The position numbers were made by a program, and so were the translations under genes. Positions 31,419 to 56,786 of a stretch of 64,000 nucleotides of DNA are shown piece after piece. The stretch covers positions 124,001 through 188,000 of the IMG/VR virus record IMGVR_UViG_3300005826_000294. One strand, 5' to 3'. The first letter of the stretch is position 1. Every line of letters begins with the position of its first letter. The notes under the pieces are model-generated. The model ran no database searches. It was given only the letters and a program-made list of their open reading frames with translations, and was not told the DNA's origin.

Positions 31419-31907
31419 TCAAATGTCCTTAGTAAGTTCCTGAATATACTCTTTTCTTTTCTTACCTTTAACATCATGATGATCTAAAAGTTGTTCAAGA
31501 TATAATTGGATTTTCTCGGGAGATTCATGATCATCCATATATTCTATTTGAGCCTGAAAGGCTTCTTGTTCATTTTCATCATCCAAATATTTATCTTTAT
31601 CTACTTTTCCTTTTACCATTCCAGCTTCTTGTTGAAAACAATGGGTCAGTTCGTGTATTACGTATCTCATAATATCTTCCCATTTTTCAGATTTTAATAA
31701 ATTTTCGTTTAAAATTATAATACCATTAATAGTTTTTGCTGATACATCTAATGGTTCAAATTTAATTTCAACAGAATCAACAAAGTCTATATCTTTATTA
31801 TATTTTTTACATTTCTCTTTATATGGTTCTTCTTTCTTAACTTCCTTTTTAATTTTTTTTATTAATCCATCATATAGTTTAGAAAGACGAGTCAATGTAA
31901 TCACCAT
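31419..31907 (-). CDS. Zinc metallopeptidase-like protein (HExxH)
   Basis: 'YVIHELTHCFQQ' plus a downstream 'ENEQEAF' third-ligand-type motif. Confidence 0.7.
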   Translation of the reverse strand: MVITLTRLSKLYDGLIKKIKKEVKKEEPYKEKCKKYNKDIDFVDSVEIKFEPLDVSAKTINGIIILNENLLKSEKWEDIMRYVIHELTHCFQQEAGMVKGKVDKDKYLDDENEQEAFQAQIEYMDDHESPEKIQLYLEQLLDHHDVKGKKRKEYIQELTKDI

Positions 31908-32808
31908 ATCCTATTTTTATTAAAAAACTATCAAATCTATTATGTATTTTTCTATATTTATTTTCATTAAAATGGGATTCTAAGTCCTTAATAACAAACG
32001 CAAACCAATTTAATTTCTTAATTTTTCTGCGTTTATATTTATCTCTATAAAAAACTTTATTAAAAACATCTTTTCCAAATATTGGTTTAAAATGTCCAAT
32101 TCCATCCCAACAAATAGCAATCTTTAATTCGGGAATTGTAATATCAATTTCATATGGAGGTATTAAATCATAATCGTGATGAATAATTTCAGCATTTAAT
32201 CTTTTGTTTAATTGATTATAAAATGCTATTTCTCTTTTTGATCCCAATCTCCCCGCTTCTTCCATCGCCTTCATAGATTTTATAGATCTTCTTATTTCAA
32301 TTCTCTTTACTCTTTCATTATATTTTTCGCAAGAAAACTCTTTAAATATTTTTATTATTGATGAAGAGCATAATGAAAATTTTTCTGCTATTTCTTTAAC
32401 AAATAAATTAGTATTAAAATAAGATAAAATCTGCTTTTTGGTCTCTTTGCTTATTGAATTAGGACGATCTTTCATCCTGTTTGATCTATAAATTGAATTA
32501 TTATGAAGATATTTTTTATAAATATTTTTATCTAAACTAACATATTTTTGAATTGTTCTTTTCTTAATATTAAATTTTTTGCTTAATTCCGTTAAACATA
32601 ATCCATTATTTACAGCATCATATATATCATAAATGTTTTTATTATAAACAGAATTATTACTATTAATTACTCTATTCTTAACAACTTTTTCACCAAATAC
32701 TTTAATCCAATAAGATTTAATTGTTCTTGGATCTAAATTATATTCTTTCTGTAATAATGTTAAGGGTTTAGTGGAATATATCTCTAAAAGTAGTTTATTT
32801 ATATCCAT
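31879..32808 (-). CDS. Multi-HTH protein with C-terminal DUF559/Vsr-like endonuclease
   Basis: 'PYEIDITIPELKIAICWDGIGHFKPIFG'; likely start at 32808 (MDINK), ORF track 32841. Confidence 0.7.
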   Translation of the reverse strand: MDINKLLLEIYSTKPLTLLQKEYNLDPRTIKSYWIKVFGEKVVKNRVINSNNSVYNKNIYDIYDAVNNGLCLTELSKKFNIKKRTIQKYVSLDKNIYKKYLHNNSIYRSNRMKDRPNSISKETKKQILSYFNTNLFVKEIAEKFSLCSSSIIKIFKEFSCEKYNERVKRIEIRRSIKSMKAMEEAGRLGSKREIAFYNQLNKRLNAEIIHHDYDLIPPYEIDITIPELKIAICWDGIGHFKPIFGKDVFNKVFYRDKYKRRKIKKLNWFAFVIKDLESHFNENKYRKIHNRFDSFLIKIGYGDYIDSSF

Positions 32809-32977
32809 CCAACTCTTCTTTTTGTAATTCAGCAATAGCAAGTGCTTGGTTTAAATTTGCTATACTTTCTTTCGCCACTTCAATTGCGTGCTGTAATCCT
32901 GCTATTTCTACTTTTACTTGCTTTAATGTAGATGGTTCGTTTATTCCTAAATACGCAATATACTTTTTAACTAACAT
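32795..32977 (-). CDS. Small coiled-coil hypothetical protein
   Basis: 60 aa amphipathic helix between two nuclease genes. Confidence 0.4.
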   Translation of the reverse strand: MLVKKYIAYLGINEPSTLKQVKVEIAGLQHAIEVAKESIANLNQALAIAELQKEELDGYK

Positions 32978-34052
32978 TTTTAATCCTTAAAACATTAAAA
33001 TCCTTATGTAAATTTTCAATTATCTTACTAACTGTTTTATTTACAATATACTTATCAACTTTTGAACAATCATCATCTATAATAATAACTTTCCATCCAA
33101 TTTTACATAATCTTTCTATTTTATCATTATCCCTTTCTTTAACTCTTTTTAATTTATTTTCACCAAAGATAGATTTCCTATGAAATGGTCCATCCCAAAA
33201 AATCGCTATTTTTTTTGATGGAATTGTAATATCTATTTCATATGGTTCGCAAATATCTAAATCATGATGTTTTACATTAAAAGATTGTTTTAATAATTTG
33301 TAGCATAAATTCTCGGGCTCAGATCCAGAAATACCATTTTTTCCACATTTTATTAAAGATTTTCGAAGACCTTCCTTTCTAACCATTATTAGCCTTTCTT
33401 CTCTATCTTCTTTACTAAAATTCTGAGAATAAAATTTTCTTACAGTTGCTTTTGATATATTACATTTAGAAGCAATTTCTTTTAAAGATGTTGAGGTAAA
33501 AAACATAATTCTAAGAGACTTCTTAATTTTCTTATCTATAACAGATAAATTCTTTATCTTTACATCTCTGTTTCTTTTAGAAGTTTTATTTTTACCATAA
33601 AACTCTATCCAATATTTATATGTAGTTTTATTATTACAACCAACCAATTTTGAAACATCTTTAATTGTTAAATCAGAATTAAATAAAGTTTTGATTTTAT
33701 TAATCTTTTCTTGAGATAAAACCCTTTTCCCATAATCTTTTATAGTTTTTGGTTTCCATCCAGCAATTTTTATATTTGGATTTCTTCTTCCATCTTTATA
33801 TTGTTTTGAAGTATCATTACTTCTTATAGTATGTAAAAACTTTTTAAAATCTATATTTCTTTTTAATAATTTTCTAATATAAGCAGGAGAACAAAAAATA
33901 TTATCTTGCTTTGATAATTGTATAACACCTTTATTAGTATTCAATATTAATTTATCTTGTTTTAGTCTAAATTCTTTATGTAATATATCTTTTTTATTCA
34001 TAATATGTCTAGATATATTTGAACTAATAATATTACAAACTGGACACTTCAT
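32967..34052 (-). CDS. Zn-finger plus multi-HTH protein with DUF559/Vsr-like endonuclease
   Basis: N-terminal CPVC...H...H; 'PYEIDITIPSKKIAIFWDGPFHRKSIFG'. Confidence 0.7.
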   Translation of the reverse strand: MKCPVCNIISSNISRHIMNKKDILHKEFRLKQDKLILNTNKGVIQLSKQDNIFCSPAYIRKLLKRNIDFKKFLHTIRSNDTSKQYKDGRRNPNIKIAGWKPKTIKDYGKRVLSQEKINKIKTLFNSDLTIKDVSKLVGCNNKTTYKYWIEFYGKNKTSKRNRDVKIKNLSVIDKKIKKSLRIMFFTSTSLKEIASKCNISKATVRKFYSQNFSKEDREERLIMVRKEGLRKSLIKCGKNGISGSEPENLCYKLLKQSFNVKHHDLDICEPYEIDITIPSKKIAIFWDGPFHRKSIFGENKLKRVKERDNDKIERLCKIGWKVIIIDDDCSKVDKYIVNKTVSKIIENLHKDFNVLRIKNVS

Positions 34053-35401
34053 AGTTCTTTAAGAATATCATTTTCAACCATCATTGCTTTATTTATAATT
34101 GTTTGTTCCGATAGTAATATTGGATTATAAATATTATTTTTATCTCCGCTTTCCCATCTATAAATAATTTTATGTTTTTTTGATATTTTATTTAAACGAT
34201 GTATTGTATGTAATAATAAATCTCCATATTTTTCTTTGGAAACACGATTTATATCGTTTGGAGCATATATAGAAGGATTTCCATGCCAAAAATCCCCTAA
34301 ATATTCATATACTATCCCTTCATATAAAGCATCAACAATATATTTACCTACTCTAATTTCACGATTTTTATTAGGTATTTTCAACTCATTAAGCCATTCA
34401 ATACAAGATATGGATACAGATTTATTATTACACATTGAACAACCAGTTCCATTAACTCGATTTTTAATATTAGCTTCCCATGAATGTCCTTTTTTACACT
34501 TCCACCAAACTTTCTTATGAGATTGAGGCAAATAAAGAGAAGGATCTAAATTTTTATCATAATCCCATTCTTTACATAAATCTGGATAATTAAATAATAA
34601 GTTATATTTACTATGAACAACTTTATTTTCACATATTAAACACTTATTTGTTCTTTTTACAAAAACACGAATTTTTAATTTATAACTATGACCTTTATCA
34701 CACTTCCACCAAACTTTCTTTACAGAACTAGGCAAATAATTTTTAGGAGAATCGTTCTTATCATAATCCCAATGTTTACAAATATCTGGAAAAAGAACAG
34801 ATAAATTATTCTCTTCCGTTGCTTTTTGCCCATCACAATAAGGACATCCATGTCCCGCTATCCGTGTCGCTGTTCGTGCTTTCCAAGTATGATTGTTTTT
34901 ACAAATCCACCATAAATTTTTGTTAGTAAAAGGTCTATGTTTGCTTGGATCAAAGTTATTCTTTTCTTGGTTAAGTTCCTTACACAACTCTGGATATTTA
35001 TATAATAAACTATCCTCTAATAATGTTTTTTTACTATTACAATAAGGACATCCATGGCCATTGGTTCGTGTATTTGGAGAAGCATCCCAGCTGTGTCCTT
35101 TATTACACTTCCACCATGTTTTTTTACATGACCCAGATGTGTATTGATTAGGATCTAATTTATTTTTATCATAATCCCATTCTTCACATAAAATAGGATG
35201 TTTAACTAATAAGTTATTTTCTTTTGATGGTTTTTTGCCAGAACAATAGGGACAACCACTATGTTTAGATTTCCTATTATTTATAGAAGCCTCCCATGAA
35301 TGATTGTTTTTACAAATCCACCACACTCTTTCTGCGGATTTATAGCCTTCTATAGAACCGTTTTTATCAAAATCCCATTCAGTATATAAATCTTTTATCA
35401 T
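34049..35401 (-). CDS. Repeated treble-clef zinc-ribbon (DUF4379-like) protein with PD-(D/E)XK-like nuclease
   Basis: About five repeats of 'EWDY.KN...S.KK.WW.C.KGHSW.A....R..G.GCPYC'; C-terminus 'YIVDAL...VYEYLGDFWHGNP'. Confidence 0.75.
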   Translation of the reverse strand: MIKDLYTEWDFDKNGSIEGYKSAERVWWICKNNHSWEASINNRKSKHSGCPYCSGKKPSKENNLLVKHPILCEEWDYDKNKLDPNQYTSGSCKKTWWKCNKGHSWDASPNTRTNGHGCPYCNSKKTLLEDSLLYKYPELCKELNQEKNNFDPSKHRPFTNKNLWWICKNNHTWKARTATRIAGHGCPYCDGQKATEENNLSVLFPDICKHWDYDKNDSPKNYLPSSVKKVWWKCDKGHSYKLKIRVFVKRTNKCLICENKVVHSKYNLLFNYPDLCKEWDYDKNLDPSLYLPQSHKKVWWKCKKGHSWEANIKNRVNGTGCSMCNNKSVSISCIEWLNELKIPNKNREIRVGKYIVDALYEGIVYEYLGDFWHGNPSIYAPNDINRVSKEKYGDLLLHTIHRLNKISKKHKIIYRWESGDKNNIYNPILLSEQTIINKAMMVENDILKEL

Positions 35402-36519
35402 TTTAATATTATAAACCTTTTTGATGGATTTTGATAAAAATAGTTAATAATATCTATAAATCTATATTCATCTTCGTCTTTTATATTACCATTATCTTCT
35501 ATTACTATATGACACCAATTCTTTTTATATAAATTTCTTTTTCTAATTATATCATTTATAATGGTTTTTCTATATGCCTCTTCACCAAATATTGGAGATC
35601 TATGACATTTCCCATCCCAACAAATTGCGATTTTCTTTGATGGAATACTTATATCTATTTCTAATGGAAATACAACTTCATAATCATGATGTATAACATT
35701 TCTTCTTCCAAATCTATTAGTTAATTTTCTATAAAATTTTCTTTCAGGCTTGGAACCAATAAATCTACAAAGTTTATAGGAAGATGCTGTTTTTCTTTGC
35801 TGAATTTGCTTCATTCTTATTTTTCTTTTTTTTAAATCTTCTTCTTTGAATATTTCGTTCCAAACTCTTTTAATACTTCCAGAAGATGTTTTACATATTT
35901 TACATATTTTTCTAATAGAAAGATCTGACTTAAAATATTTAATAATTTTCTTATAACTATATGGATCTCTATTTTCTATTTTTTGTAAAGAAGAACTCTT
36001 TTTCTGTCGTTGTTTTGAAATTCTTTTTCCTCTATAATGAATATCTTCACTATTAAAGTTATATTTCATTATCCTTGATACTGTATTATATCCACATCCA
36101 ACCTTTTTAGAGATTTCTGTAATTGTTAAATCAGTATAAAAAAGATCTCTAACTTTATTTATGATATTTTCATTAACAATGAAATATCTATTGCCAGTGT
36201 TTGTTAAGTTTTTATTAGGTTTTCTTTTTTTTAATTCATATTGCCGTTTTAAAGATAAAGAATTCATTAATGATTTTCTTTCTTTATATCCTTCAATCAT
36301 ACTCCATTGCTTACATATATAACCAAAACTTATTCTAAATCCATATTTAACACTTAATTTTTTTGATAAATCAACACATGAAATGTTTTTATTAAAATAA
36401 CTAATTATATCTTTATTAATAATATCAACAAAGTATTTATGATCTTTAACCTTAAAAATATGATTGCTTATTCCTTTAATTTGATATAACTTATTACAAA
36501 CTGGACACTTCATCGTCAT
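35398..36519 (-). CDS. Zn-finger plus multi-HTH protein with DUF559/Vsr-like endonuclease
   Basis: MKCPVC start; 'PLEIDISIPSKKIAICWDGKCHRSPIFG'. Confidence 0.7.
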   Translation of the reverse strand: MTMKCPVCNKLYQIKGISNHIFKVKDHKYFVDIINKDIISYFNKNISCVDLSKKLSVKYGFRISFGYICKQWSMIEGYKERKSLMNSLSLKRQYELKKRKPNKNLTNTGNRYFIVNENIINKVRDLFYTDLTITEISKKVGCGYNTVSRIMKYNFNSEDIHYRGKRISKQRQKKSSSLQKIENRDPYSYKKIIKYFKSDLSIRKICKICKTSSGSIKRVWNEIFKEEDLKKRKIRMKQIQQRKTASSYKLCRFIGSKPERKFYRKLTNRFGRRNVIHHDYEVVFPLEIDISIPSKKIAICWDGKCHRSPIFGEEAYRKTIINDIIRKRNLYKKNWCHIVIEDNGNIKDEDEYRFIDIINYFYQNPSKRFIILK

Positions 36520-37404
36520 TTATATTATCCTTCTTTGTCTTAAATGTCGTAACCTCATATAATTTGGGGAAACAGCAAGTACTCGAAATCCGCCGAAACC
36601 TGTTGGTATCGGTTTTATACTGTTTTTAATATACTTTAACATATCTGTATGTCTTTGAACGAAATGACTTAATTCATTATTTAAAGTAGCCGATAATGGG
36701 GGTGGGTTCATGGAGACACCATTATCTGTTAGTGTAAACTCTCTTCCTGCCTCAATTAACATTTGAGCGGCTGTAGCAAGAATAAAAGCACCCTCAACAA
36801 TTATATGAGCAAATCTTTTATATATTACTTCCATATCAAAAGTAAAATCTGTAAAATGAGGTGTTTGATTAAATTCACTTAAACTACATTTAAGAAAATA
36901 TACAAGTTCTTCATCTGTAAAAACAAAACAATCAACAAAGGTTGTATTACCATATGCATCAAGACTTTCAACTTCCAGATTATTCTTTAATCTTGCTTTT
37001 AGGCAAGTTAATAAGCAGTTAATACCTTGAATTTCCTCATCACTAAGAACTATCCTACAAGGATCTCCAATTTTATCTCCAGCGACACCAATATCAGCAT
37101 CTCTTTCAAGGACGATAAAGTTTAATCTCGCTTCCGTTGTAAAGCCATTTAGTGTTGCTCTCCAATGATCAACCCAAATACCTGTGGAGGAATTTTGTGG
37201 AACCATGAATGTTGTTCTATATCTACCAGAATCAATACGAGAAACATAAGCAGAAGAAAGGGAACGGACTACATTTCCTTGACTATCTATAATTTCAACT
37301 TCTGGAGATGAATCAGCATCGGCAACTTGACCTGTTGCATCTCTTAAATCTATTTCTAACACAACGGTCTGTCCTTTTATAACTTGCCTACAAGTTGTAA
37401 CCAT
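36520..37404 (-). CDS. Neck / head-tail adaptor protein (gp13-like) with N-terminal Ig-like domain
   Basis: 294 aa; helical C-terminal half 'FTDEELVYFL...SEFNQTP...EAGREFTLTDNGVS'; position in the neck cluster. Confidence 0.6.
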   Translation of the reverse strand: MVTTCRQVIKGQTVVLEIDLRDATGQVADADSSPEVEIIDSQGNVVRSLSSAYVSRIDSGRYRTTFMVPQNSSTGIWVDHWRATLNGFTTEARLNFIVLERDADIGVAGDKIGDPCRIVLSDEEIQGINCLLTCLKARLKNNLEVESLDAYGNTTFVDCFVFTDEELVYFLKCSLSEFNQTPHFTDFTFDMEVIYKRFAHIIVEGAFILATAAQMLIEAGREFTLTDNGVSMNPPPLSATLNNELSHFVQRHTDMLKYIKNSIKPIPTGFGGFRVLAVSPNYMRLRHLRQRRII

Positions 37405-38317
37405 TGTTCCTCCTAAAATGCTCTATATATAATAAAAACTCCTTTCTATCAAACTTATCACTTTTAGACATATTATCCTTTGCTTTCAACCATTGATGAT
37501 TTTCTGGAGCAAAGGCAGCCTTTATGTGTATTGGATCATTAAAATCAAATGCTGAGAGTGGGAAAATATGATCAATATGATATTCATCTATATTTTCTGG
37601 AAATGGTTTTAAATGATCAATAATATCATTATATTTTATACTTTTATTCTTTATATTTCCAAATCTTGCTCTTAATTTAGTTTTAATTCTATAATTATTA
37701 TCATTTTTATATCTTTCTTTTCTATAACAATTTCTACATATTGTTCCGTTTTCTGTTTTCTTATATCCTTCTTTTATTTCACCACATTTACATTTATGTT
37801 TTGGAGCTTCATAACATTTTTCGCACAAATTATTTTTCTTTATTCCTATATTTCCGCATTTACATAAAATAGTTTTTCTTTTATATTGTTTTCCATAACA
37901 TTTTGAACATAATTTATTTGCTTCGATTGGTTTTATTTCTCCACATTTACATTTATATTTTGGAGCTTCATAACATTTTACACAAATAGGAAAACCATCT
38001 ATATATGAATAAATTGGCATATGTTTAAAGCATTTAGAACATTCAATTATTTTTCCTTTATAACAAGAACGACATATCGGCCCTTCTTTTACTGCTATTT
38101 CTTTATTCTTTTTACATATACAACATATTTGTTTAGGAGACTTATAACATTTATTACATTTAGTTTTTGTAATCATTTTAGAGTAATTACCGCAATTAGG
38201 ACATGTTTTTTTAATCCTACTATAACATTTTACACAAAAACCTTTTGCTTTATGTGGTTTTATATCACCACAGGATTTACATTTAATCACAGGCAATTTC
38301 AATTCTTGGAAAACCAT
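37388..38317 (-). CDS. CxxC-repeat protein with C-terminal HNH endonuclease
   Basis: Many CxxC pairs; 'YHIDHIFPLSAFDF...PENHQWLKAKDNMSK'. Confidence 0.75.
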   Translation of the reverse strand: MVFQELKLPVIKCKSCGDIKPHKAKGFCVKCYSRIKKTCPNCGNYSKMITKTKCNKCYKSPKQICCICKKNKEIAVKEGPICRSCYKGKIIECSKCFKHMPIYSYIDGFPICVKCYEAPKYKCKCGEIKPIEANKLCSKCYGKQYKRKTILCKCGNIGIKKNNLCEKCYEAPKHKCKCGEIKEGYKKTENGTICRNCYRKERYKNDNNYRIKTKLRARFGNIKNKSIKYNDIIDHLKPFPENIDEYHIDHIFPLSAFDFNDPIHIKAAFAPENHQWLKAKDNMSKSDKFDRKEFLLYIEHFRRNNGYNL

Positions 38318-39281: not shown

Positions 39282-41444
39282 TTAAGTCATGTCTACAATT
39301 TGAACAATTGCGTTCTTTCTTAAGTTTCCACTAAATAATAAATTATTTAATGTTCCTGTCTGTCGGGCAACGTCATTTGCTACAGCACCTACAGTAGCTT
39401 TTGATGTTGGATCGTTATAGAGAAGTTGTCCATTTCTATAAATGAAAATATTATCTCTAAACTGGATATCAGTATATGTACTTAAATCTATTGCTGTCCC
39501 CTGATCAGCTGTACGAGAACTATCAAGAGTATCCGCAATAGATTCAGCCAAAGTAACCTCATAAACAGCCCTTTCAGGATTTAGAGTTACTGCACTTAAA
39601 GCATCATCAATTCCCTCTAATACACCAATAAGACTATTTACATCACCAACTGGAGTAATATTATCAAATATAGGCATTACATAATAAGCATCAATCCATC
39701 TATGAGTTGTATCACCCATTTGATAAGAATCATCACAACATGGAGTAAGATCACTACAAACTTCTGCTACTGTTAAACAACCAGTGATCTCAAGATTTTC
39801 AATTGTAGTGTCAGTGAAAATCAAATTATCAGCAGTTAAATTAACAAAATAACCATCATTAAATCTATGAGTTGAGTCTCCAATATCATAAGCATCATCG
39901 CAACAAGGAATGATATCGCTACAAATTCCACCATTGAAAACAACACATCCATCAAAAGTTGTAAGTCCTGTAACGTTAAGGTCATCTCCAATACTTACAT
40001 CTCCTGTGGTTGTAACATTGGTTGTGTTAACGTCAGTTGCATTAACGGTTGTAGCATTAACAGTTGTTACATCTATTGTTACAGCATCTAAGTTTGTAAA
40101 ATAACCATCATTAAATCTATGAGTTGAATCTCCAATATCATAAGCATCATCGCAACAAGGAATGATATCGCTACAAATTCCACCATTGAAAACAACACAT
40201 CCATCAAAAGTTGTTGTTCCATTTATATCTATATCATTAGTAACATTAAGATCAGTTGTATTTATAATTGTTGTGTTGATTGTAGTTGTATTAACTGTAG
40301 TAGAATCAAGATTTACAAAATATCCATCCTGCCATCTTTGAGTTTCACTACCAATATCATAAGCATCATCACAACAAGGTAAAATATCACTACAAACCAC
40401 ACCATCAAAATTAATACAATCTTCACTTCCAGTGCCTAAGAAAATATCGCCATCAAGTAAAATGTCTTCACTGGATAATGTAAGTTTTCCATCTCCATCT
40501 AAACATAATGATGCTTGATAGGCGTTTGATCCATCACCAGAATTAAGAACTACACAGGCATCTAGATCATCTGTATTTCCTTCATCACCAACATGAACAA
40601 CCGGATTTTGTTTTACACCATCTTCATAAATAACAAATTGAAATCTATCTCCATTAACACTATCTGTAATCATACATAGATAGCCATCAATTAGAGCTGT
40701 TCCATCGCCACCAGATAGAACTAAACAAGCATCTTCATCAGTTGCGGCATCAGCATCATTATTAACCTGCCAAGAATCACTTGGTGTCCCTGTTAGATTA
40801 GTAGTGCTATTAAATATATTTTCTAATGCTTCTTGAACATCATCACCAACTACAACACCACTATCATCTACACCAATCTTGCTAGCACCAGAATCTCCAA
40901 TTTCTGTTGAAGAAAGATCACCATAAGCGTCACCCGCACCGATATAAGCAATTGCTCTATCTGGTACAACATCTGATCCAGCAGTAAAAGATGAAGATAA
41001 TCCCCAATATCCATCAAAAACCCAACCAGTACGATTATATCCATCAGTATCTCGCTCTGAAAGACCTGTCCATGAACTTAATGATTCTGTACCACTAACA
41101 TTAAGTGTAGTAATTGGATCAGTTACTAACATTTGTTCTGTATTTATATATGTGGTTGTTCCATTAACAGTGAAATCACCCTGGACAATCGCATTTGCTT
41201 TCATTTCTACATTACCAGTAAAAGTAACCTGACCATCACCTGTCTGATTAATTTCACCATCATCTGCATGAATCTCTAATCTGGTAGCACCCCCGTTGGC
41301 GCGATCTTGAAAAATTAACCCTGTTAAATATCCATCTTCTAAGTCGCCACCCGAATATCCGTCAATCGTTAATTGCGCAAATTCATAACTACCATTAGAA
41401 TCTAATTGATCTGGACGGAGAACTGAACGTTGTGCCATCATCAT
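39282..41444 (-). CDS. Acidic Cys-rich virion appendage (whisker/decoration-like) protein
   Basis: 720 aa; four 'SD..PCCDD.Y..G....R..D.Y' repeats; followed by a strong terminator; upstream of the neck genes like T4 wac. Confidence 0.55.
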   Translation of the reverse strand: MMMAQRSVLRPDQLDSNGSYEFAQLTIDGYSGGDLEDGYLTGLIFQDRANGGATRLEIHADDGEINQTGDGQVTFTGNVEMKANAIVQGDFTVNGTTTYINTEQMLVTDPITTLNVSGTESLSSWTGLSERDTDGYNRTGWVFDGYWGLSSSFTAGSDVVPDRAIAYIGAGDAYGDLSSTEIGDSGASKIGVDDSGVVVGDDVQEALENIFNSTTNLTGTPSDSWQVNNDADAATDEDACLVLSGGDGTALIDGYLCMITDSVNGDRFQFVIYEDGVKQNPVVHVGDEGNTDDLDACVVLNSGDGSNAYQASLCLDGDGKLTLSSEDILLDGDIFLGTGSEDCINFDGVVCSDILPCCDDAYDIGSETQRWQDGYFVNLDSTTVNTTTINTTIINTTDLNVTNDIDINGTTTFDGCVVFNGGICSDIIPCCDDAYDIGDSTHRFNDGYFTNLDAVTIDVTTVNATTVNATDVNTTNVTTTGDVSIGDDLNVTGLTTFDGCVVFNGGICSDIIPCCDDAYDIGDSTHRFNDGYFVNLTADNLIFTDTTIENLEITGCLTVAEVCSDLTPCCDDSYQMGDTTHRWIDAYYVMPIFDNITPVGDVNSLIGVLEGIDDALSAVTLNPERAVYEVTLAESIADTLDSSRTADQGTAIDLSTYTDIQFRDNIFIYRNGQLLYNDPTSKATVGAVANDVARQTGTLNNLLFSGNLRKNAIVQIVDMT
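39846..40214. repeat. 117-bp direct repeat (39846-39962 and 40098-40214), one synonymous mismatch
   Basis: Read directly from the sequence; encodes TTFDGCVVFNGGICSDIIPCCDDAYDIGDSTHRFNDGYF twice. Confidence 0.9.
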
Positions 41445-41467
41445 TGTACATATGCCTCCAAAATTAA

Positions 41468-42082
41468 CTATTTTTTATCTTTCATATATAACATAAACTT
41501 ATCAAACTCTTGTTTATTATACTTCCCGCCTTTTCTACAATTCTCATTTTTCTTCAACCATCTATGATTTTCTGGAGAAAAAGCAATTTTTATATGAGAT
41601 AAATTATTAAAATTAAAAGCAACCAAAGGAAATATATGATCAATATGATATTCTTTACGATCTCCTGGACAATTCCCTAAATGCTCAAAAATTTGTTGAT
41701 AATTAATTCCATATTCTCTTGATGTCTTCACCTTTCCTTTTTTGCTATATCTTTTAAACGCATTACATAATCTTTTTCTTAGAGTATCAATTACAGAATA
41801 TCTTTCTTTTTTTCTACATGAACTACAAATTGGATTACCATTATTCCTAACAAATACAAATCTTAAATTATTACATATAGAACATATTTCTTCATTTTTA
41901 TATTGTTTGTTATAACACTTTTGGCACATCACTCCATTTTTTATTGAATGAGTTTCTTTTATTTTACCACAAGTTTCACATTTTCTATTTTTTGGAGGAT
42001 GTTGTTTATTATAACAAGCTTTACATAAAATATTCTTTTTATTATATATTGTTTTTATTTTAAAGCACAAAGAACATTTCAT
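41468..42082 (-). CDS. CxxC-repeat protein with C-terminal HNH endonuclease
   Basis: 'YHIDHIFPLVAFNF...PENHRWLKKNENCRK'; paralog of 37388..38317 and 61895..62590. Confidence 0.75.
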   Translation of the reverse strand: MKCSLCFKIKTIYNKKNILCKACYNKQHPPKNRKCETCGKIKETHSIKNGVMCQKCYNKQYKNEEICSICNNLRFVFVRNNGNPICSSCRKKERYSVIDTLRKRLCNAFKRYSKKGKVKTSREYGINYQQIFEHLGNCPGDRKEYHIDHIFPLVAFNFNNLSHIKIAFSPENHRWLKKNENCRKGGKYNKQEFDKFMLYMKDKK

Positions 42083-42309
42083 GAATTTTTGCTATAAATT
42101 ATCTTTTTTAACGAACGCATTTCATCATCATATTTACGCATATCGCTATTTATAAACTCTATTGCCAACATTTCAGCTTTATTTCCAGGATCTTCAAACA
42201 CAAAGTTAAATTTATCCCCACGGCCACACTCAATTAGACGAAGTCCCTGTAATTTGAGATATGCTGCTAACGCAATATCGCTAGTTGTATATGTCTCATT
42301 TTTAGTCAT
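42079..42309 (-). CDS. Small DUF5659-like protein
   Basis: 'ETYTTSDIALAAYLKLQGLRL...KFNFVFED'; likely start at 42309 (ATGA overlap), ORF track 42354. Confidence 0.5.
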   Translation of the reverse strand: MTKNETYTTSDIALAAYLKLQGLRLIECGRGDKFNFVFEDPGNKAEMLAIEFINSDMRKYDDEMRSLKKIIYSKNS

Positions 42310-42725
42310 AGTGTAATCACCTGTATAGTATCGCCCTTTAAAAGTTGCATACAAAACCGAATGTGACCGGTTGTACTTCCCGGATATACATCTGCCGGGT
42401 CATCTGGGTCTACAGGGAGTTGGTTTCCATTAAACAATAATTGTCCGTTTCTATAAATAGCTACGCGTTCTACAAATAATGCCGTATCATAAGTCAATCC
42501 ACCAGGAATAGCGAAATCTTGATAGGCTGGAAATTTACTCGTAAGTCTTATCCTCCCTATAGGAGCGTCATTGCTCAAGAGACGATCACATAATCCTACT
42601 GCGAGCTTTTCGCAGGTCACATTGTGATCTTTTATTTTCTCTGTAATTACAGAGTCCGTAGCTAGATCTACGCTTTCTATAGATCGATCTAGTACCTGGG
42701 ACCCTCTTACGAGAGATCTTGGCAT
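42306..42725 (-). CDS. Small virion appendage protein, paralog of the termini of 39282..41444
   Basis: N-terminal MPRSLVRGSQVLD and C-terminal 'IYRNGQLL...L.KG..IQ.I' shared with the 720-aa protein. Confidence 0.55.
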   Translation of the reverse strand: MPRSLVRGSQVLDRSIESVDLATDSVITEKIKDHNVTCEKLAVGLCDRLLSNDAPIGRIRLTSKFPAYQDFAIPGGLTYDTALFVERVAIYRNGQLLFNGNQLPVDPDDPADVYPGSTTGHIRFCMQLLKGDTIQVITL

Positions 42726-42805
42726 TAACTTAACTCCTCTTTAACAAAAACTAATTAACATAACTGCCCTAAGGCACGACTTTATAATCTACATACATAT
42801 GAGAT

Positions 42806-42821
42806 TATTGATAGTTTTTTT
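42806..42821 (-). promoter_or_regulatory. Putative late promoter AAAAAAACTATCAATA
   Basis: Identical to 15684..15699; intergenic, about 80 nt upstream of the ATG at 42725. Confidence 0.65.
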
Positions 42822-42825
42822 ATAA

Positions 42826-44415
42826 TTATGAACTAAGAGATACATCAAGTACGTAATCTTCAGTATTAAAAGTAAATCCACTCTTCACTCCAGCATCCAA
42901 AACACCAATTTGACTTAACATAATATTTTCTACTATATCAATTACTTGCTCAATAGTAATTGATCCGGTTCCTTGGATCTCTGATATACATGTATTTCTT
43001 ACAATTTCTTCACCAATTTGAGTAAATAATGCTCCACTCACTTGTTCTTGTCTCATTAAAGGCATCTTTTTTCCGCTCTTTAAAGTTGCTATAGCAAGGG
43101 GTTTTTCATTATCATAAATATGAGAAATTATTTTTTCAGTTATTTTTTCTTCTATAAGTTTATTTAATAATGGTGGTATTTCTCCACGAACAAATTCTAC
43201 ATTTAATATTTCTAAAGCAGCCTCTCTTGAAGGTCTTGAAATCTCTAAAATAGCATCTCCTAATCTTCCAGGTCTCATTAATGCTGGGTCAATTAATTCT
43301 GGCCTATTTGTTGCTCCAATAAAAATAACATCTTGATTAGTATCAACTCCTTGAAGTTCTGTAAGAAGTGTTGGAACAATAGTTTTTTCTGGAGAATATG
43401 TAGCAGTATCTTTTCTTTTTCCTGCAATACTTTCAATTTCATCCCAAAAAATAATAGATGTAAATCCAGTAGTTTCTGCCATTTTTCTTGCTTCATCAAA
43501 AAGTTTTCTTATAGAGGCTTCTGTATTTCCTGCCCATTTTGATAATAACTCCGGACCATTAATAAGAAAAAACCCTCTTTCATCGCTGGATCCTTTTATC
43601 TCAGCATTCTTTTCTCTTAATTTTAACATCTCATTAAATATTGCTTTAGCAATCATGGTTTTTCCACATCCTGGAGAACCATGAAGCAAGGCCGCTCTTA
43701 AAGGTTTTAATCCATATTTTTTAAACTTATCTTTATAAACAGTTGGGAATATTAATCTTTCTTGTAAATATTTCTTTTCTTCTTCTAAACCTTTTACATC
43801 TTCAAATGTTATGTTAGGAACCTCTGATAAAGAAAACATACTTTTTTCTCTTGTTCCAAGAACTTCAAGAACTATTTGAGATTCTAAATCATAACGGATT
43901 TCATCACCTTCTTTACAGAAAACCCAATCTGCTACTTTTAGAATTAGTTCATGTCCGCCATCATCTATAACTATTCTACTATCATCTAATACTCTTTGAA
44001 CTCTTGATAAACGACCATCATATATCTCATGATCCCGAATTCCAGCAAGCACGCGATCTGGTCCATGACCCATTACAAAAACTTCTGTTCCTGTTTTTAA
44101 TTTATTTACATCTACATCTGGAGAAATAATAATTTCTTCTTTTATTGGTCCCAATTGAACCAAAGCCCTTCTATTAGGAAGGGCTTTTACACATCTAACT
44201 CGTTGTCCAGACTTATCTTGTAAAACCTTAATTCTTTCACGAAGACTTTCTAATTCTCTTTTATATACATTAGCATTTTCAGCCTCTTCCATATAATACC
44301 ATAATACATCAATAAGATGAGACATTTCATTAGGAGTTAAGGCTTTTGATAATTCGTATTTTCCACCTCGTATGAAACATTCTCCAACTAATTTTTTTAC
44401 TTCAAATCTATCCAT
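42826..44415 (-). CDS. ARC/Mpa-like (proteasomal-type) AAA+ ATPase
   Basis: N-terminal coiled coil, two OB-like segments, Walker A GSPGCGKT, 'INGPELLSKWAG', Walker B IIFWDEIE, 'IVPTLLTELQGV', SRH 'GATNRPELIDPALMRPGRL'. Confidence 0.8.
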   Translation of the reverse strand: MDRFEVKKLVGECFIRGGKYELSKALTPNEMSHLIDVLWYYMEEAENANVYKRELESLRERIKVLQDKSGQRVRCVKALPNRRALVQLGPIKEEIIISPDVDVNKLKTGTEVFVMGHGPDRVLAGIRDHEIYDGRLSRVQRVLDDSRIVIDDGGHELILKVADWVFCKEGDEIRYDLESQIVLEVLGTREKSMFSLSEVPNITFEDVKGLEEEKKYLQERLIFPTVYKDKFKKYGLKPLRAALLHGSPGCGKTMIAKAIFNEMLKLREKNAEIKGSSDERGFFLINGPELLSKWAGNTEASIRKLFDEARKMAETTGFTSIIFWDEIESIAGKRKDTATYSPEKTIVPTLLTELQGVDTNQDVIFIGATNRPELIDPALMRPGRLGDAILEISRPSREAALEILNVEFVRGEIPPLLNKLIEEKITEKIISHIYDNEKPLAIATLKSGKKMPLMRQEQVSGALFTQIGEEIVRNTCISEIQGTGSITIEQVIDIVENIMLSQIGVLDAGVKSGFTFNTEDYVLDVSLSS

Positions 44416-44425
44416 TTACTTTCCC

Positions 44426-45094
44426 TTATAATTCTATTAATTCTATATTCCCATCATCACCAATAATAACATAAGCTCTATGATGAGAATCAACCCAATC
44501 TCCTGTGTTATAATACATTGTATCATATATTTTTCTACAACAAGGCCTATGGGTATGTCCAGCTATAATAATATTTGCCTGACTTTCAAGTCTTACTAAT
44601 TTATTTTCTTGTTTTTGTAATAAAAATTTTTGTACTATCCATGTTTTATGTAAAGCATGTTGTAGATCTATGCCTGTTAATTCATAGATCAATCGATTAA
44701 ATCTAATAATAAAACGACTAAATTTAGGATATTTCATTACTGTTGAGTCTGTTTGATGTCCGTGATAAATCCTTATTATTTTATTATCAATTCTTAATAA
44801 AATATCTTTTTTAAATGAGATCTTTGGTAATATATCTTGTAATCCATAAACAAACCAGTCATGATTTCCATTTATATATATTATGTTTTTAAATTTCTGT
44901 ATTACTGATAAAAATGATCTATGTCTTTCATCAAAATTTAGATTTTTAGCAAAATCAAATATATCTCCATTTAATACTAAAGTACAATCTTTATTCGAGA
45001 AATTTTCCAATAAAGATAATAAACTCGGCAAATTTCTATTTGCTTGACGATCTCCTATATGAGTATCACTAAGGACCAACCACAATTTTTTCAA
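44426..45094 (-). CDS. Calcineurin-like metallophosphoesterase (LpxH-like)
   Basis: SDTHIG, NGDIFD, GNHD, HGH, GHTH, NTGDW motifs. Confidence 0.85.
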   Translation of the reverse strand: MKKLWLVLSDTHIGDRQANRNLPSLLSLLENFSNKDCTLVLNGDIFDFAKNLNFDERHRSFLSVIQKFKNIIYINGNHDWFVYGLQDILPKISFKKDILLRIDNKIIRIYHGHQTDSTVMKYPKFSRFIIRFNRLIYELTGIDLQHALHKTWIVQKFLLQKQENKLVRLESQANIIIAGHTHRPCCRKIYDTMYYNTGDWVDSHHRAYVIIGDDGNIELIEL

Positions 45095-45566
45095 ACTCCT
45101 TATTATTTAAACAATAATCATACAAATCTTCTGGAGTTGTAGATTCAGGTTCCATATTTGTTTTCAAACCTGATTTATTTAATAATATTGTAACTGCTTC
45201 CGAACAATGTAATTTTTTTGAATCTCTAAAAGGATTTCTATACCATTTCCCAAACCATCTTCTAGCACCTAATCCAAAAGCAGACCAAAAATCATATGTT
45301 CCTCCTAACCATTTTGCTATATATTTTAGACCCTCAGATAAGTCTTTATTACATTTAAATTCATCTACCAATTTATTCTTTTTAATCCATTTAGATTTTG
45401 GTGTTAATTTATATCCCCAAAAAGTTGCTTCAATTACAAATATGTCTTGTAAAACCTCTGAATAATATGTAGCAAAAGCATGACTAACTCTTCCTTTTGT
45501 AAACCATCTTATCAACTTTCCCATTATCCCCGAGCTTGAAGAAAATCCTATAGTAATCATAAGCAC
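45069..45566 (-). CDS. Permuted papain-like (NlpC/P60, YiiX/YaeF-like) enzyme
   Basis: His before Cys: 'SHAF...VIEAT...G..YDF...LHCSEAV'. Confidence 0.75.
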   Translation of the reverse strand: MLMITIGFSSSSGIMGKLIRWFTKGRVSHAFATYYSEVLQDIFVIEATFWGYKLTPKSKWIKKNKLVDEFKCNKDLSEGLKYIAKWLGGTYDFWSAFGLGARRWFGKWYRNPFRDSKKLHCSEAVTILLNKSGLKTNMEPESTTPEDLYDYCLNNKEFEKIVVGP

Positions 45567-45583
45567 CTCCTATTGACGGCACT

Positions 45584-46684
45584 TTAACTATCATCATAAC
45601 TCAAACAATAAAAAGTTGCTGTTGCTAACGAACCTCCTAACTCAACATCATGTTGTAATTTAACTAAAATTTCCATACCATAATTTCCAAATATCTCTGT
45701 AACTGCTTGATAGTTCCAAGGATATGTGATTACATCAACATCAAGATCTCTCCAAGTTGGAGTTTGACATGTTGTAGCAGGAATTGGGGGTTTAGAACCA
45801 TTAGCCTCATTAATATAATCTATTTGTGATTTATAAATAGTTGGATTCCCAAGAGGAATTTTTGTACCACTTGGATATGGAGTTGGTGTGTATTGTGGAG
45901 CAAAAACATCAACTAATCCATATGGTTGAAATGTAACAGAATCTTTAATTGAAATATTGCTACTAAATTGAACCTCAGTAGATACAATTTTTAACTTTTT
46001 TCCACTTTGTGGTCTTAAAATCCAATCAGATCCATTTACTTCATATGTATCTACAGTGATAGTCTCAGATTCAGATAATGGAGTTAAAAATGTAACTCTA
46101 GAATTACGATAATCTACTATAAAATCCCCTCCATATCCATCATGAGGGTCTTGTTCTGTTTTCTCTACATCATCAACATAAACTTTTAATCTAGGGACAT
46201 AACCTTCTTCTGTTGTAATAAAATCTTCATCACTATATTTTCCATGATAATTATCAATCCAACATTTTCCAGTTGGACTATCATAATTGGTGTGATCACC
46301 AGAATCAACTAAAGTCTGTCCAGATACTTTTATAGATTTAAAATACCAAGTAGTTTTATCAGTCCAATTTGGTGTAATCGCTGTATATCTCGATCCTTCA
46401 GTGCTTTCAACAGATACACGAAGAACATTATCTTTTGTTACTTTTTCTAATGAATTTACTTCTTCTATAGGAACTCCATCATGTCCATTAAGTGTAAATC
46501 CAAGAAGAGATTCATCTCCAACATCTAATTCATCTTTCATAAAAACACTAATAGTATCTCCAATAACATTTATATGACTTAATGCTATTTTTATTTCACT
46601 ATCGCGAATCTCTTCAGTCAATTTTTCAATATCTACAGCTTCATTTAAAGTATCTGATGCTACAGAGTATGTATATTCTGCCAT
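45584..46684 (-). CDS. Putative virion structural protein
   Basis: 366 aa, acidic and beta-rich, within the fibre cluster. Confidence 0.5.
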   Translation of the reverse strand: MAEYTYSVASDTLNEAVDIEKLTEEIRDSEIKIALSHINVIGDTISVFMKDELDVGDESLLGFTLNGHDGVPIEEVNSLEKVTKDNVLRVSVESTEGSRYTAITPNWTDKTTWYFKSIKVSGQTLVDSGDHTNYDSPTGKCWIDNYHGKYSDEDFITTEEGYVPRLKVYVDDVEKTEQDPHDGYGGDFIVDYRNSRVTFLTPLSESETITVDTYEVNGSDWILRPQSGKKLKIVSTEVQFSSNISIKDSVTFQPYGLVDVFAPQYTPTPYPSGTKIPLGNPTIYKSQIDYINEANGSKPPIPATTCQTPTWRDLDVDVITYPWNYQAVTEIFGNYGMEILVKLQHDVELGGSLATATFYCLSYDDS

Positions 46685-47268
46685 TATATTCTCCTTACAG
46701 AAACTTTACTATCTTTAATTGATATTTCTTTACCATTTTTTGTTGTTGATGCTTGAAATTTTATACAATGATAACCAGATTCCCATTCTATATTTAAAAA
46801 ACTACACTGGGTAATCCAACTCTCACTGTCTAATGATTCAAGAACATATAAGTCTTCATTATCTATATTAACTCTTAAAGAAATTAATCCTTTTTTATTT
46901 TTTCTTTTAACATTTGTGGTCCAATCTATACGATAATTACCAGAACAAAAAGGACTATTTGGGTTTATAGATATAATTGTCATTGGCTCTGTAGAAGATG
47001 TATTTATCTCTTGTTCTTGTGTTCCTTCTAATTCATTTATTAAAGTATTATTTTCTATTCCAAAATCTACAATATCTTTTTCTTCCTGATTCATTTCAAT
47101 TATATTATATCCATCATATCCATCATACCCATCAATTTTCCAATATTTTGAAGGAATGTCTTCTACATTAGATAAATCAGGATTAATTATCCAATCTTCT
47201 GTTGAATAGTCAGGAGTATTAACTGATAATAAGTATTCTTTTGTAGTCTTATTTAAAACATTCGCCAT
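46684..47268 (-). CDS. Putative virion protein with DGYDGYDGY
   Basis: 194 aa; 'SVNTPDY...WIINPDLS.V..IP.KYWKI' N-terminal module. Confidence 0.5.
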   Translation of the reverse strand: MANVLNKTTKEYLLSVNTPDYSTEDWIINPDLSNVEDIPSKYWKIDGYDGYDGYNIIEMNQEEKDIVDFGIENNTLINELEGTQEQEINTSSTEPMTIISINPNSPFCSGNYRIDWTTNVKRKNKKGLISLRVNIDNEDLYVLESLDSESWITQCSFLNIEWESGYHCIKFQASTTKNGKEISIKDSKVSVRRI

Positions 47269-54389: not shown

Positions 54390-54631
54390 TACTCCTCATT
54401 CATGGGTTCTTCTAACACTACAACATTCTCTGCCTGAGGGCCAGTGTTATTTGTCCCAAGAGTAAAAGAAACCTTTTGTCCAGCGGTTAAGGTCTTAAAA
54501 GCACCAGGCTCCGCTACAATATTAGTATAATGGACAAATAAATCCTTTCCTCCATCTTCAGGCTTACAAAACCCAAAACCTAAATTGTTATTAAACCATA
54601 TCACTTCACCCTTCATTACTTGATCTGTCAT
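54389..54631 (-). CDS. csp: Cold-shock domain RNA chaperone
   Basis: 'GEVIWFN...GFGF...DLFVHYTNI...FKTL..GQKVSF...GPQAENV' with RNP1 and RNP2. Confidence 0.92.
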   Translation of the reverse strand: MTDQVMKGEVIWFNNNLGFGFCKPEDGGKDLFVHYTNIVAEPGAFKTLTAGQKVSFTLGTNNTGPQAENVVVLEEPMNEE

Positions 54632-55721
54632 TTTTCATTTTCTCCTTTACTTCTTTACTAATGCGGGTTCGTCCCGCATCAACTTCACAAATAGTACTTA
54701 CATTTACACCATACTTTTCCGCAACTTCATAAAAAGTATATTCCTTTAAATCATTAATAATATTCTCTACATCATTTCTAGATAATCTGTTTTTATCTAA
54801 ATGATTCATATTATTTTGCTTTAAAACATTTGAAACAAAAACTATAGAAACATCATTTTCTTTAGCAATATCTTTCTTTTTTCTGCCTTTTATTCTTTCA
54901 TTAATAATATTTTCTCTAATTAAATTATAATCTTTTTGTTCTATCCATTCAACATTTAATTTATTTATTTTTACAAGATTTTTTACAAGTTCATATTTTC
55001 TATCCAATATTGTGAAATCATAAGCATTTTTGAATAACCATTTAATTGTATTTGTATATTTATTTTTTCCTTGAATTTGAAGTTTAAAAGACCCAGTATC
55101 ATATAATATAGTGGTTTGAGTATTAATAGTTCCAAAGTTATTCAAACAATTCTTAATCCATTGTAACACTTCTTTTGTTCCTCTAGCAGTCATATTATTA
55201 TATTTTGGAGAATAAGATCCATCTCCATCTATATAACCTCTAATAAAGGATCTAATATTTTCTTCTTTAGAAATATTTGGTGGAATAAGAGTTTTAGCTT
55301 TCCTTGGAGTTATATTAAAATTTTTTAATAAATCTTCAACTATATAATCATTTATTATATGAACTGATGCTGTTTCTCTTGTTTTTCTTTCATTAATAGT
55401 TCCATTAAAACATAGCACAGAACAAAGTTTTTGTAAATGTTTAATATCTTTTTTATGTATTTCTAATGATAAATTATTATAATGAACACATCCATCAGCG
55501 GCTAAAAATCCTGCCCAATAAGAATTAATATTATTAGGTTGCTGAAAAAATCTTTTATTTAGAGTAAATCTTCTTTTATCTCCAATATTGTAGTGTAAGT
55601 TATAAACTCTATTTCTTATAGTAGATCTTGAAACATTCATAGTTTCAGCGATTTTTCTTTCAGAAATTCCCTTTCTATATAAATAATTTATTTTTTCTAC
55701 ATCTACAGATATTTTTTTCAT
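54606..55721 (-). CDS. LAGLIDADG homing endonuclease with flanking HTHs
   Basis: YWAGFLAADG and FIRGYIDGDG. Confidence 0.85.
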   Translation of the reverse strand: MKKISVDVEKINYLYRKGISERKIAETMNVSRSTIRNRVYNLHYNIGDKRRFTLNKRFFQQPNNINSYWAGFLAADGCVHYNNLSLEIHKKDIKHLQKLCSVLCFNGTINERKTRETASVHIINDYIVEDLLKNFNITPRKAKTLIPPNISKEENIRSFIRGYIDGDGSYSPKYNNMTARGTKEVLQWIKNCLNNFGTINTQTTILYDTGSFKLQIQGKNKYTNTIKWLFKNAYDFTILDRKYELVKNLVKINKLNVEWIEQKDYNLIRENIINERIKGRKKKDIAKENDVSIVFVSNVLKQNNMNHLDKNRLSRNDVENIINDLKEYTFYEVAEKYGVNVSTICEVDAGRTRISKEVKEKMKNDRSSNEG

Positions 55722-56770: not shown

Positions 56771-56786
56771 TATTGATAGATTTTTT
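56771..56786 (-). promoter_or_regulatory. Putative late promoter AAAAAATCTATCAATA
   Basis: 15/16 match to the other two copies; intergenic. Confidence 0.6.

Follow-up and report, generated by a model that had tools for sequence, protein, structure and literature searches.

A jumbo-phage AAA+ ATPase of ARC/Mpa architecture lacks the proteasome-docking tail and lies in a conserved tail/fibre module

Introduction

ARC/Mpa is the ATPase of the Pup-proteasome in Actinomycetota and a few other phyla, and it is relevant to virulence in M. tuberculosis. Mpa and PAN form hexamers in which paired N-terminal helices recruit the client, an OB ring forms the entrance, and an AAA ring translocates and unfolds the client (PMC8755798, PMC9599533). 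Here, we analyze a phage gene for an ARC/Mpa-type AAA+ ATPase, P0001, which lies on the minus strand at 42826..44415 of a 64,000-nucleotide stretch of DNA (hereafter the window, to which coordinates refer unless stated otherwise). The window covers bases 124001-188000 of a 301,683-bp IMG/VR virus record (G000; 29.9% guanine plus cytosine, GC), which has a CheckV completeness of 75%, the label 'provirus' and no terminal repeat found. Nearly all genes of the window are on the minus strand.

The literature searched, together with a comparative review of jumbo phages, held no description of a phage ARC/Mpa-type ATPase; that review lists only MoxR, BCS1, ClpA and ClpX among AAA+ proteins (PMC7824862). 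An annotation of the window that preceded this work (the original prediction) had proposed such a gene. Its open reading frame (ORF) proved real, a single frame of 529 amino acids (aa) with an ATG start, although the strand had gone unstated, and "phage-encoded" holds for a gene in this virus record. All quoted motifs are present in the translation (NGPELLSK at residues 286-293, VPTLLTELQGV at 347-357, DPALMRPGRL at 376-385 and SGA at 460-462), as is the C-terminus, DYVLDVSLSS.

Results

P0001 has the architecture of ARC/Mpa

The best NCBIfam match to P0001 was TIGR03689 (pup_AAA, ARC/Mpa; 254.5 bits, E 1.9e-75), which spans residues 52-497 against positions 28-477 of the 512-position model, and the runners-up for the whole protein were CDC48 (165.7 bits) and PAN (TIGR01242; 154.7/151.4 bits). 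Scored alone, the AAA core (residues 196-408) gave 202.3 bits for ARC, 168.0 for CDC48 and 142.9 for PAN, and residues 1-195 matched ARC as the only NCBIfam family (E 8.5e-6; 52-190 against model 28-167), while residues 405-529 had no NCBIfam match. Pfam revealed a single AAA module (PF00004, 243-387, E 1.7e-33) and a proteasomal OB_C match at 138-186 that, at 20.5 bits, is below threshold. CDC48/p97 entries head the raw phmmer lists because the scores of their two AAA domains are added up; a single CDC48 domain reaches ~140 bits at best, and Mpa is matched at 179 bits in one stretch (P0001 94-494). Furthermore, P0001 carries two insertions in its AAA module, ~15 aa after the Walker A helix (~262-281) and ~5 aa before Walker B (~314-318). 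Both are missing from CDC48 D1 and D2 and are length-matched in Mpa: residues 168-330 of P0001 (163 aa) correspond to Mpa 215-376 (162 aa) with no net gap, and p97 D2 is 20 residues shorter.

This likeness stops short of orthology. Overall identity to Mpa is ~26-28%, and the TIGR03689 equivalog cut-off (504.75 bits) is missed both by P0001 and by its homologue in a second virus record, G001 (260.4 bits), versus 597-853 bits for 23 actinobacterial ARCs. P0001 also falls outside the CDC48 family (TIGR01243, cut-off 802.65 bits), having a low score, one AAA module and a position apart from D1 and D2 in the tree, and outside PAN/Rpt, having a score well under the test level of 500 bits, two OB domains and no HbYX tail. 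P0001 is not an ARC orthologue but a phage-lineage member of the ARC/Mpa architecture.

An AlphaFold2 (AF2) model of P0001 built on a 32-sequence family alignment (mean predicted local distance difference test score, pLDDT, 79) agreed with this assignment. In Foldseek searches of the PDB with the model, the 30 best matches were all to M. tuberculosis Mpa (E 7.8e-33 to 2.5e-27), followed by Rpt subunits (1e-23 to 1e-20). Reading from the N-terminus, with all parts on the minus strand, the AF2 secondary structure shows a helical cap (residues 3-25) and a long helix (28-66) that together form a putative coiled-coil arm (residues 1-66; 44218..44415). Next come OB domain 1 (residues 71-126; 44038..44205), with five strands in both AF2 models, and OB domain 2 (residues 135-186; 43858..44013), a five-stranded beta domain. 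These are followed by the AAA alpha/beta core (residues 196-395; 43231..43830), identified by PF00004 and by columns invariant in the 32 sequences, and by the AAA lid with a beta-grasp-like element (42829..43230), in which the model has a hairpin (441-453), a helix (488-511) and a strand (522-526).

The tandem OB domains foreseen in the original prediction were recovered by three routes. In the AF2 model, OB1 aligns to Mpa OB1 and to the N-domain OB of PAN/Rpt; an ESM Atlas feature search with residues 1-195 returned bacterial clusters that carry both PF17758 and PF16450 (scores 0.94 and 0.93); and residues 63-195 of the Atlas ESMFold model align to ARC families in 10 of 10 rows. A profile of the N-terminal family region found nothing significant among PDB sequences (ARC 2wfw at E 0.4, Rpt6 at E 0.14), and the OB claim thus rests on the folds and on TIGR03689. 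At the other end, a hairpin in the lid and a terminal strand make up the beta-grasp domain, described as unique to Mpa homologues (PMC9599533). The P0001 model contains this element, with its terminal strand at low pLDDT, and the VIA alignment of the model extends to Mpa 587-595.

The coiled coil is putative. The predicted long helix 28-66 carries an a/d heptad (L55/L58/I62/L65) just before OB1, with E54, L58 and I62 near-invariant; a two-copy complex prediction of residues 1-192 reached a median of 0.35 against a mark of 0.42 (controls 0.00), which speaks neither for nor against pairing of the helices. Two features set the family apart from Mpa or add to its signature, namely a conserved N-terminal helical cap (residues 1-27) that is family-specific and absent from Mpa, and an additional Gly in the RPGRLGD motif.

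The phage family conserves the motor and lacks the docking tail

A word search uncovered ~45 clusters of relatives, full-length (503-547 aa, 44-78% identity) and without exception metagenomic, some of them on contigs of 77-461 kb; the 461-kb contig is the one with P0038. Below these, there is a sharp drop in score to P0048 (39% identity), with CDC48s after it. IMG/VR contributed one further relative, on the 340-kb contig G001 (84% complete; 41% identity). The 32-sequence alignment comprises 31 family members and the outlier P0048.

All 32 sequences share Walker A residues G246/G249/G251/K252, pore-loop residues W294 and G296, Walker B D325-E326, the pore-loop-2 residues E343-K344-T345...P348-T349, sensor-1 N370, Arg fingers R381/R384 and G461 of the SGA motif. 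Within the AAA core of P0001, Walker A spans G246-T253 (G-S-P-G-C-G-K-T; 43657..43680, minus strand), pore loop 1 is K293-W294-A295-G296, and the pore-loop-2 region is 342-351. With its catalytic and pore residues conserved, the ARC-type motor is complete and would be expected to be active. Five homologues (P0008, P0016, P0025, P0032 and P0038; proteins of 838-923 aa) carry a LAGLIDADG-type intein (PF14528/PF05204; Hom_end) at an identical position: the BLAST alignments break at residue 253, which places the insertion between K252 and T253 of the Walker A P-loop. A P-loop intein site is typical of essential ATPases.

The family has a conserved C-terminal end of its own, D-Y-V-[IL]-D-V-S-L-[NS]-x. 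A GQYL/HbYX tail (i.e., with a penultimate Tyr) was found in 0/32 aligned phage-family sequences versus GQYL in 20/20 sampled actinobacterial ARCs, so its absence, first noticed for P0001, extends to the 31 other aligned sequences. No partner genes were detected in the phage records either. G000 (75% complete) has no match to PF00227 (Proteasome/HslV), PF05639 (Pup), PF03136 (Pup ligase, PafA/Dop) or PF00574 (ClpP), and G001 (84% complete) has none to PF00227, PF05639 or PF00574, PF03136 not having been searched there; the search for Pup, PafA and 20S genes that the original prediction had suggested as a check thus came back empty for all three in G000 and for Pup and 20S in G001. Because P0001 has neither a GQYL/HbYX tail nor phage-encoded Pup, Pup ligase, 20S/HslV or ClpP, it most likely works without a proteasome.

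Outside this family, viral likeness is slight. The best match to the P0001 model among BFVD viral proteins was 9e-17 (giant-virus AAA proteins) versus 8e-33 for Mpa, and a collection of deposited phages gave AAA-only matches. The automatic label of the Joint Genome Institute (JGI) pipeline for the relatives is 'proteasome-associated ATPase'.

The phage clade is sister to the sampled cellular ARCs

Among the matches listed in a general AAA-pattern scan, the closest cellular AAA cores belong to five Acidimicrobiia proteins (43-46% identity), which, at 574-595 aa and with a GQYL end, are genuine ARCs; next among those matches come ARC-like proteins of Nitrospirota and Poribacteria as well as archaeal CDC48s. 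The genomes of these five nearest cellular ARCs all encode PafA/Dop, adjoining ARC where checked. ARC-like proteins of Nitrospirota (L034, L041, L046, L063 and L079) and Poribacteria (L068), of 541-643 aa, also end without GQYL (e.g., ...EERLINQII), and PafA/Dop is encoded in both GQYL-less cellular genomes tested (G010 for L034 and G011 for L068). Loss or replacement of the docking tail is therefore not unique to the phage clade.

Trees of the AAA module (75 rows x 303 columns) were computed by quick LG+C20, by LG+F+G4 with ultrafast bootstrap (UFBoot) and by FastTree; support is given as LG+C20 SH-aLRT (Shimodaira-Hasegawa-like approximate likelihood ratio test) / LG+F+G4 SH-aLRT-UFBoot / FastTree. 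The 20 actinobacterial ARCs (6 plus 14 added) came from a sample in which 23/41 genomes matched TIGR03689 at 597-853 bits; G012 (locus L112), an unpublished genome, is counted only in that 23/41 and was left out of alignments and trees. Two PANs were also taken in, and four FtsH served as outgroup. The phage family was monophyletic (96 / 96-99 / 0.97), formed a clade with P0048 (99 / 98.4-100 / 0.98) and, together with P0048, was sister to all sampled cellular ARC (97 / 98.2-100 / 0.99). The resulting ARC superclade of phage and cellular proteins (96 / 99.7-100 / 0.99) shuts out CDC48 D2, CDC48 D1, PAN and FtsH. CDC48 D2 is the nearest non-ARC group, and PAN lies outside the group of ARC and CDC48 D2.

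In a phylogeny against ARC, PAN and Cdc48, P0001 thus groups with ARC in three agreeing analyses, and it neither clusters with generic Cdc48/FtsH-like proteins nor lacks OB domains; together with the TIGR03689 score, this upholds the assignment as an ARC/Mpa-type ATPase (UFBoot 100 for the grouping). The trees indicate that the phage clade is an old, separate lineage of ARC type, nested in no host phylum. Because it branches outside all sampled cellular ARC, P0001 gives no hint of the host, contrary to what the original prediction had suggested. Family signature peptides likewise had no match, and hence no prophage copy, in 185,579 species genomes, and the tail sheath offered as host clues only weak matches to Bacillus phage G and an Eggerthella phage.

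The ATPase gene sits in a conserved tail/fibre block

In the direction of transcription, the ATPase gene is preceded by genes for a 1358-aa beta-helix fibre, a ConA-like lectin protein, two uncharacterised proteins, a 165-aa ClpP/crotonase-fold-like protein and a metallophosphoesterase. It is followed, after a spacer of ~100 nucleotides (nt), by a 139-aa fibre-like protein, a DUF5659 protein, a 204-aa zinc-ribbon ORF found only here and a 720-aa fibrous protein. Further on come three small proteins, a 294-aa protein, a run of homing endonucleases and proteins of 162 and 658 aa, and then a 1347-aa tail spike, a 1626-aa protein, the tail sheath and a tail protein with a lysin domain. A syntenic core (metallophosphoesterase, ATPase, 139 aa, DUF5659, ~530 aa, three small proteins, 294 aa, 162 aa, 658 aa and beta-helix fibre) recurs in four other loci (L002, L003, L005 and L006), whose ATPases are 41-65% identical. 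The locus is a myovirus tail/fibre block, and the original placement of the gene inside a virion morphogenesis region agrees with the presence of tail sheath, tail-spike/fibre proteins and tail lysin on the same strand and with this conserved synteny.

In every locus examined, the 222-aa metallophosphoesterase (44426..45094, minus strand; PF12850/PF00149) is encoded on the upstream side of the ATPase, and in 3 of the 4 loci in which the gene was called the two are direct neighbours: it adjoins the ATPase here and in L003, where the two overlap by 11 nt, and in L005, one gene intervenes in L006, and it is also found in L002. In the window, the ATPase ATG comes after a 10-nt spacer that contains a GGGAAAG-type ribosome site. 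The metallophosphoesterase motifs have LpxH-like spacing (DTH...GDIFD...GNHD...HGH...GHTHRP), and all catalytic motifs are invariant across loci.

On the other side of the ATPase, the 139-aa fibre-like virion protein (42306..42725, minus strand) has a counterpart in each of the four other loci (41-76% identity). It shares an N-terminal 'MPRS' module and a C-terminal 'NGQLL' module, as well as fibre-typical repeats, with the fibrous protein of 720 aa (39282..41444, minus strand), which is found in all loci and measures ~530 aa in the four orthologues. The 720-aa protein had no PHROG, Pfam or PDB match; its repeats are of the type C-x-D-x-Y-x-x-G-D-x-T-H-R-W/F-x-D-G-Y-F, and the idea that it hosts an intein was ruled out, the extra ~190 aa being internal repeat copies (an expansion). 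Profiles of the 530-aa and 294-aa neighbours had no match in the PDB, and the ESM Atlas returned only 'hypothetical protein, Uroviricota' for the 294-aa family. The small DUF5659 protein (42079..42354, minus strand; PF18903, E 1.1e-8) is 56-76% identical in all loci by multiple alignment, and its conserved start is probably the ATG at 42309, overlapping the stop of the 139-aa gene. It was considered as a Pup-like tag and rejected, since the domain is compact and conserved, lacks a disordered tail and does not end in GGQ/GGE.

The ClpP/crotonase-fold-like protein (165 aa; 45069..45566, minus strand; phrog_1128, E 3e-13) is encoded two genes upstream of the ATPase. The gene is present in L002 and L003 and is replaced by a patatin-like phospholipase in L005 (6423-7310) and L006 (5731-6681), so its product is not an obligate partner of the ATPase. 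This exchange suggests that the slot upstream of the metallophosphoesterase is a swappable accessory-enzyme cassette beside the fibre genes.

A conserved intergenic motif follows the ATPase gene

A conserved AT-rich 17-mer, TAAAAAAACTATCAATA (42806..42822, minus strand), immediately follows the ATPase stop and lies 91 nt ahead of the next gene. Its core, CTATCAATA, is invariant in 5/5 loci (the spacers of the window, L002, L003, L005 and L006). The same 17-mer occurs 83 nt upstream of the tail-sheath gene; besides 42806-42822, the positions of the motif in the window are 15684-15700 and 56771-56782 (minus strand). G001 (L119-L124) holds 7 copies, all on the coding strand, versus 0 for a reversed-pattern control, and at least 5 of the 6 examined are intergenic. 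Judged by its distribution, the motif is probably a clade-specific, perhaps late, promoter or operator for abundant structural genes. A scan for sigma-70 promoters and terminators gave nothing above shuffled background.

In one public run of an estuary metatranscriptome, eight contigs match 41000-46700 without differences, three of them inside the ATPase gene. These contigs place the phage in the estuary and are compatible with transcription, as a hint rather than a proof.

Two further features of the record were observed. Homing-endonuclease-like ORFs (phrog_4645, HNH and LAGLIDADG-type) are dense in the window (28505-29386, 31879-38317, 41468-42082, 11547-13046 and 54606-55721), and ORFs of 309, 373, 450, 361, 320 and 204 aa that are missing from the syntenic loci break up the conserved structural module. 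Outside the window, G000 has a cluster of nine tRNAs (G000:C1:4636-13695) that serve AT-rich codons: Lys-TTT (four copies), Met, Ile-TAT, Asp, Leu-TAA and a ninth call by ARAGORN with the four-base anticodon 'gaaa' (12512-12587).

Discussion

Taken as a whole, it is reasonably probable that P0001 is a proteasome-independent hexameric unfoldase or assembly chaperone that acts in virion morphogenesis; of the options raised by the original prediction, this is the best-supported one. That P0001 is an ARC-type motor independent of a proteasome we hold to be very likely, and that its clients are virion components is a plausible proposal that falls somewhat short of an even chance. We infer hexamer formation and unfolding from kinship with characterized motors. 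P0001 would act alone, as a homohexameric AAA+ protein unfoldase or remodeller. By analogy with Mpa, its N-terminal helical arms would capture the client and its double OB ring would form the entry pore, and a single AAA ring would then thread the polypeptide with ATP by means of the K-W-A-G pore loop, Walker A/B, sensor-1 and the Arg fingers. That the gene keeps its place in the tail/fibre module throughout a clade of 300-460-kb phages suggests virion proteins as clients; the motor might help to assemble fibres or tails, remove an assembly factor or load proteins into the particle.

Several points weigh against this reading. A place among structural genes gives only circumstantial support to a structural client, and the promoter-like motif after the ATPase suggests that the fibre genes start a separate transcription unit. 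The records are 75% and 84% complete, leaving room for a protease or tag gene in the missing part, and a host protease could be used as well. The C-terminal strand and the last ~20 residues of P0001 are modelled at low pLDDT. The reference set of the tree is a limited sample, comprising no Rpt, Cpa, Vps4 or Afp15/Pvc15, and the contigs of the RNA library may be DNA carry-over, from a sample that is maybe the one from which the assembled contig came.

The completeness of the records also bears on an improbable alternative, that P0001 is the unfoldase half of a degradation machine and feeds host ClpP, HslV, 20S, Anbu or an unrecognised phage peptidase by GQYL-free docking. Docking could employ the beta-grasp hairpin, which is retained in the model and which contacts the 20S alpha-ring in Mpa (PMC9599533), or the D-Y-V-I-D-V-S-L-N tail, whose strong conservation suggests a partner; a gene for a ClpP/crotonase-fold-like protein lies two genes upstream in the window, as it does in L002 and L003. 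However, that gene gives way to patatin in L005 and L006, PF00227 and PF00574 are absent from G000 and G001, and the family tail has no penultimate Tyr or HbYX. In addition, AAA proteins of the classical clade lack the IGF/LGF loops used for ClpP docking. We give the same low weight to a host-directed effector, an unfoldase that dismantles or inactivates particular host proteins (of defence systems, or regulators) during takeover, for which the structural-block position would be incidental or reflect late expression or packaging. The family-specific cap could recognise a novel client, the genes beside it are for accessory enzymes (metallophosphoesterase, patatin, crotonase-like) and not for core structural proteins, and jumbo phages hold varied AAA+ chaperones of uncertain role (PMC7824862). 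Yet the position among tail and fibre genes is strictly conserved down to 41% identity. Genes for takeover or anti-defence, by comparison, are typically early and variable. Nor was there a PADLOC or anti-defence signal, no PADLOC scan having been made.

The original prediction also entertained a dominant-negative or hijacking subunit of the host Pup-proteasome, which would enter the host Mpa/ARC ring or compete with it; this part of the prediction was not supported. The overall architecture is Mpa-like, and a missing docking tail would make mixed rings defective, but the idea is very improbable given ~26-28% identity to Mpa and a deep sister clade in place of a recent host capture. The 29.9% GC is unlike Actinomycetota or Nitrospirota and, with the AT-codon tRNAs, is inconsistent with the known Pup-proteasome phyla; the N-terminal region is too diverged to recognise by sequence, making Pup binding unlikely, and the phage has no Pup. 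Least probable of all, to the point of being negligible, is a generic Cdc48/FtsH/Vps4-like phage AAA protein with a superficial likeness to ARC. CDC48/p97 do lead the raw phmmer lists, but ARC scores highest on the AAA core alone, the tandem OB and beta-grasp elements are present, the tree sets P0001 apart from CDC48 D1, D2, PAN and FtsH, and the best BFVD viral protein stands at 9e-17 against 8e-33 for Mpa; core score, tandem OB and tree together refute it.

A viral sister clade that is well conserved, with the complete motor yet without docking tail, Pup or 20S partner, would show that the ARC scaffold can work, and be selected, outside proteasomal degradation, and would add a new kind of AAA+ factor wired into phage tail/fibre modules. 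It would also provide a natural 'tail-less' comparator for the roles that the coiled coil, double OB ring and beta-grasp play on their own, and it corrects the JGI label, which wrongly implies a proteasome. A bolder and rather unlikely extension is that this clade of estuarine/sediment jumbo phages kept, or long ago acquired, an ARC motor that was never proteasome-dependent as a dedicated unfoldase for virion assembly or cargo loading in the tail/fibre apparatus. If true, this would be the phage counterpart, on a proteasomal-ATPase scaffold, of the idea advanced for Afp15/Pvc15 of extracellular contractile injection systems (eCIS); the sister position would bear on the origin of the bacterial proteasomal ATPase, to which the docking tail and the coupling to Pup could have been added later.

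Comparison with known systems

Among described systems, ARC/Mpa (TIGR03689; PDB 5KWA, 5KZF, 7PX9 and 7LJF; N-domain 3M9B, 3FP9 and 2WFW) is the best match in profile, fold and tree. In both, an N-terminal helix is followed by tandem OB domains, then by one classical AAA module bearing the two insertions, and last by a lid that includes a beta-grasp element. Unlike ARC/Mpa, P0001 has no GQYL and no linked Pup, PafA/Dop or 20S genes, reaches half the equivalog score, carries an extra N-terminal cap and an extra Gly in RPGRLGD, and belongs to a separate sister clade in a low-GC jumbo-phage tail/fibre setting. P0001 differs from PAN/Rpt1-6 on every count: these have a single OB domain and an HbYX tail, and they lack both the beta-grasp and the ARC insertions. 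The AAA core of P0001 is 40-45% identical to archaeal D2 of the Cdc48/VAT/p97 group, but these proteins have two AAA modules and a double-psi-barrel N-domain and lack the 15-aa and 5-aa insertions.

The AAA+ assembly ATPases of contractile particles and viruses offer a functional analogy only, as motors in or beside a contractile-tail module that are thought to aid assembly or cargo loading. Such analogues are Afp15/Pvc15 of eCIS, ClpV of the type VI secretion system and MoxR of Acidianus two-tailed virus. The BCS1-, ClpX- and ClpA-like genes of jumbo phages are further AAA+ analogues (PMC7824862). Afp15/Pvc15 did not appear among the top PDB, PHROG or NCBIfam matches, no direct comparison having been made, and all of these ATPases belong to other AAA+ clades with other N-domains, none with the ARC tandem OB. 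The fold and the family of P0001 are known; the new finding is that ARC has a coherent sister clade carried by viruses, which lacks the docking tail and Pup and is set in a tail/fibre module conserved among 300-460-kb phages.

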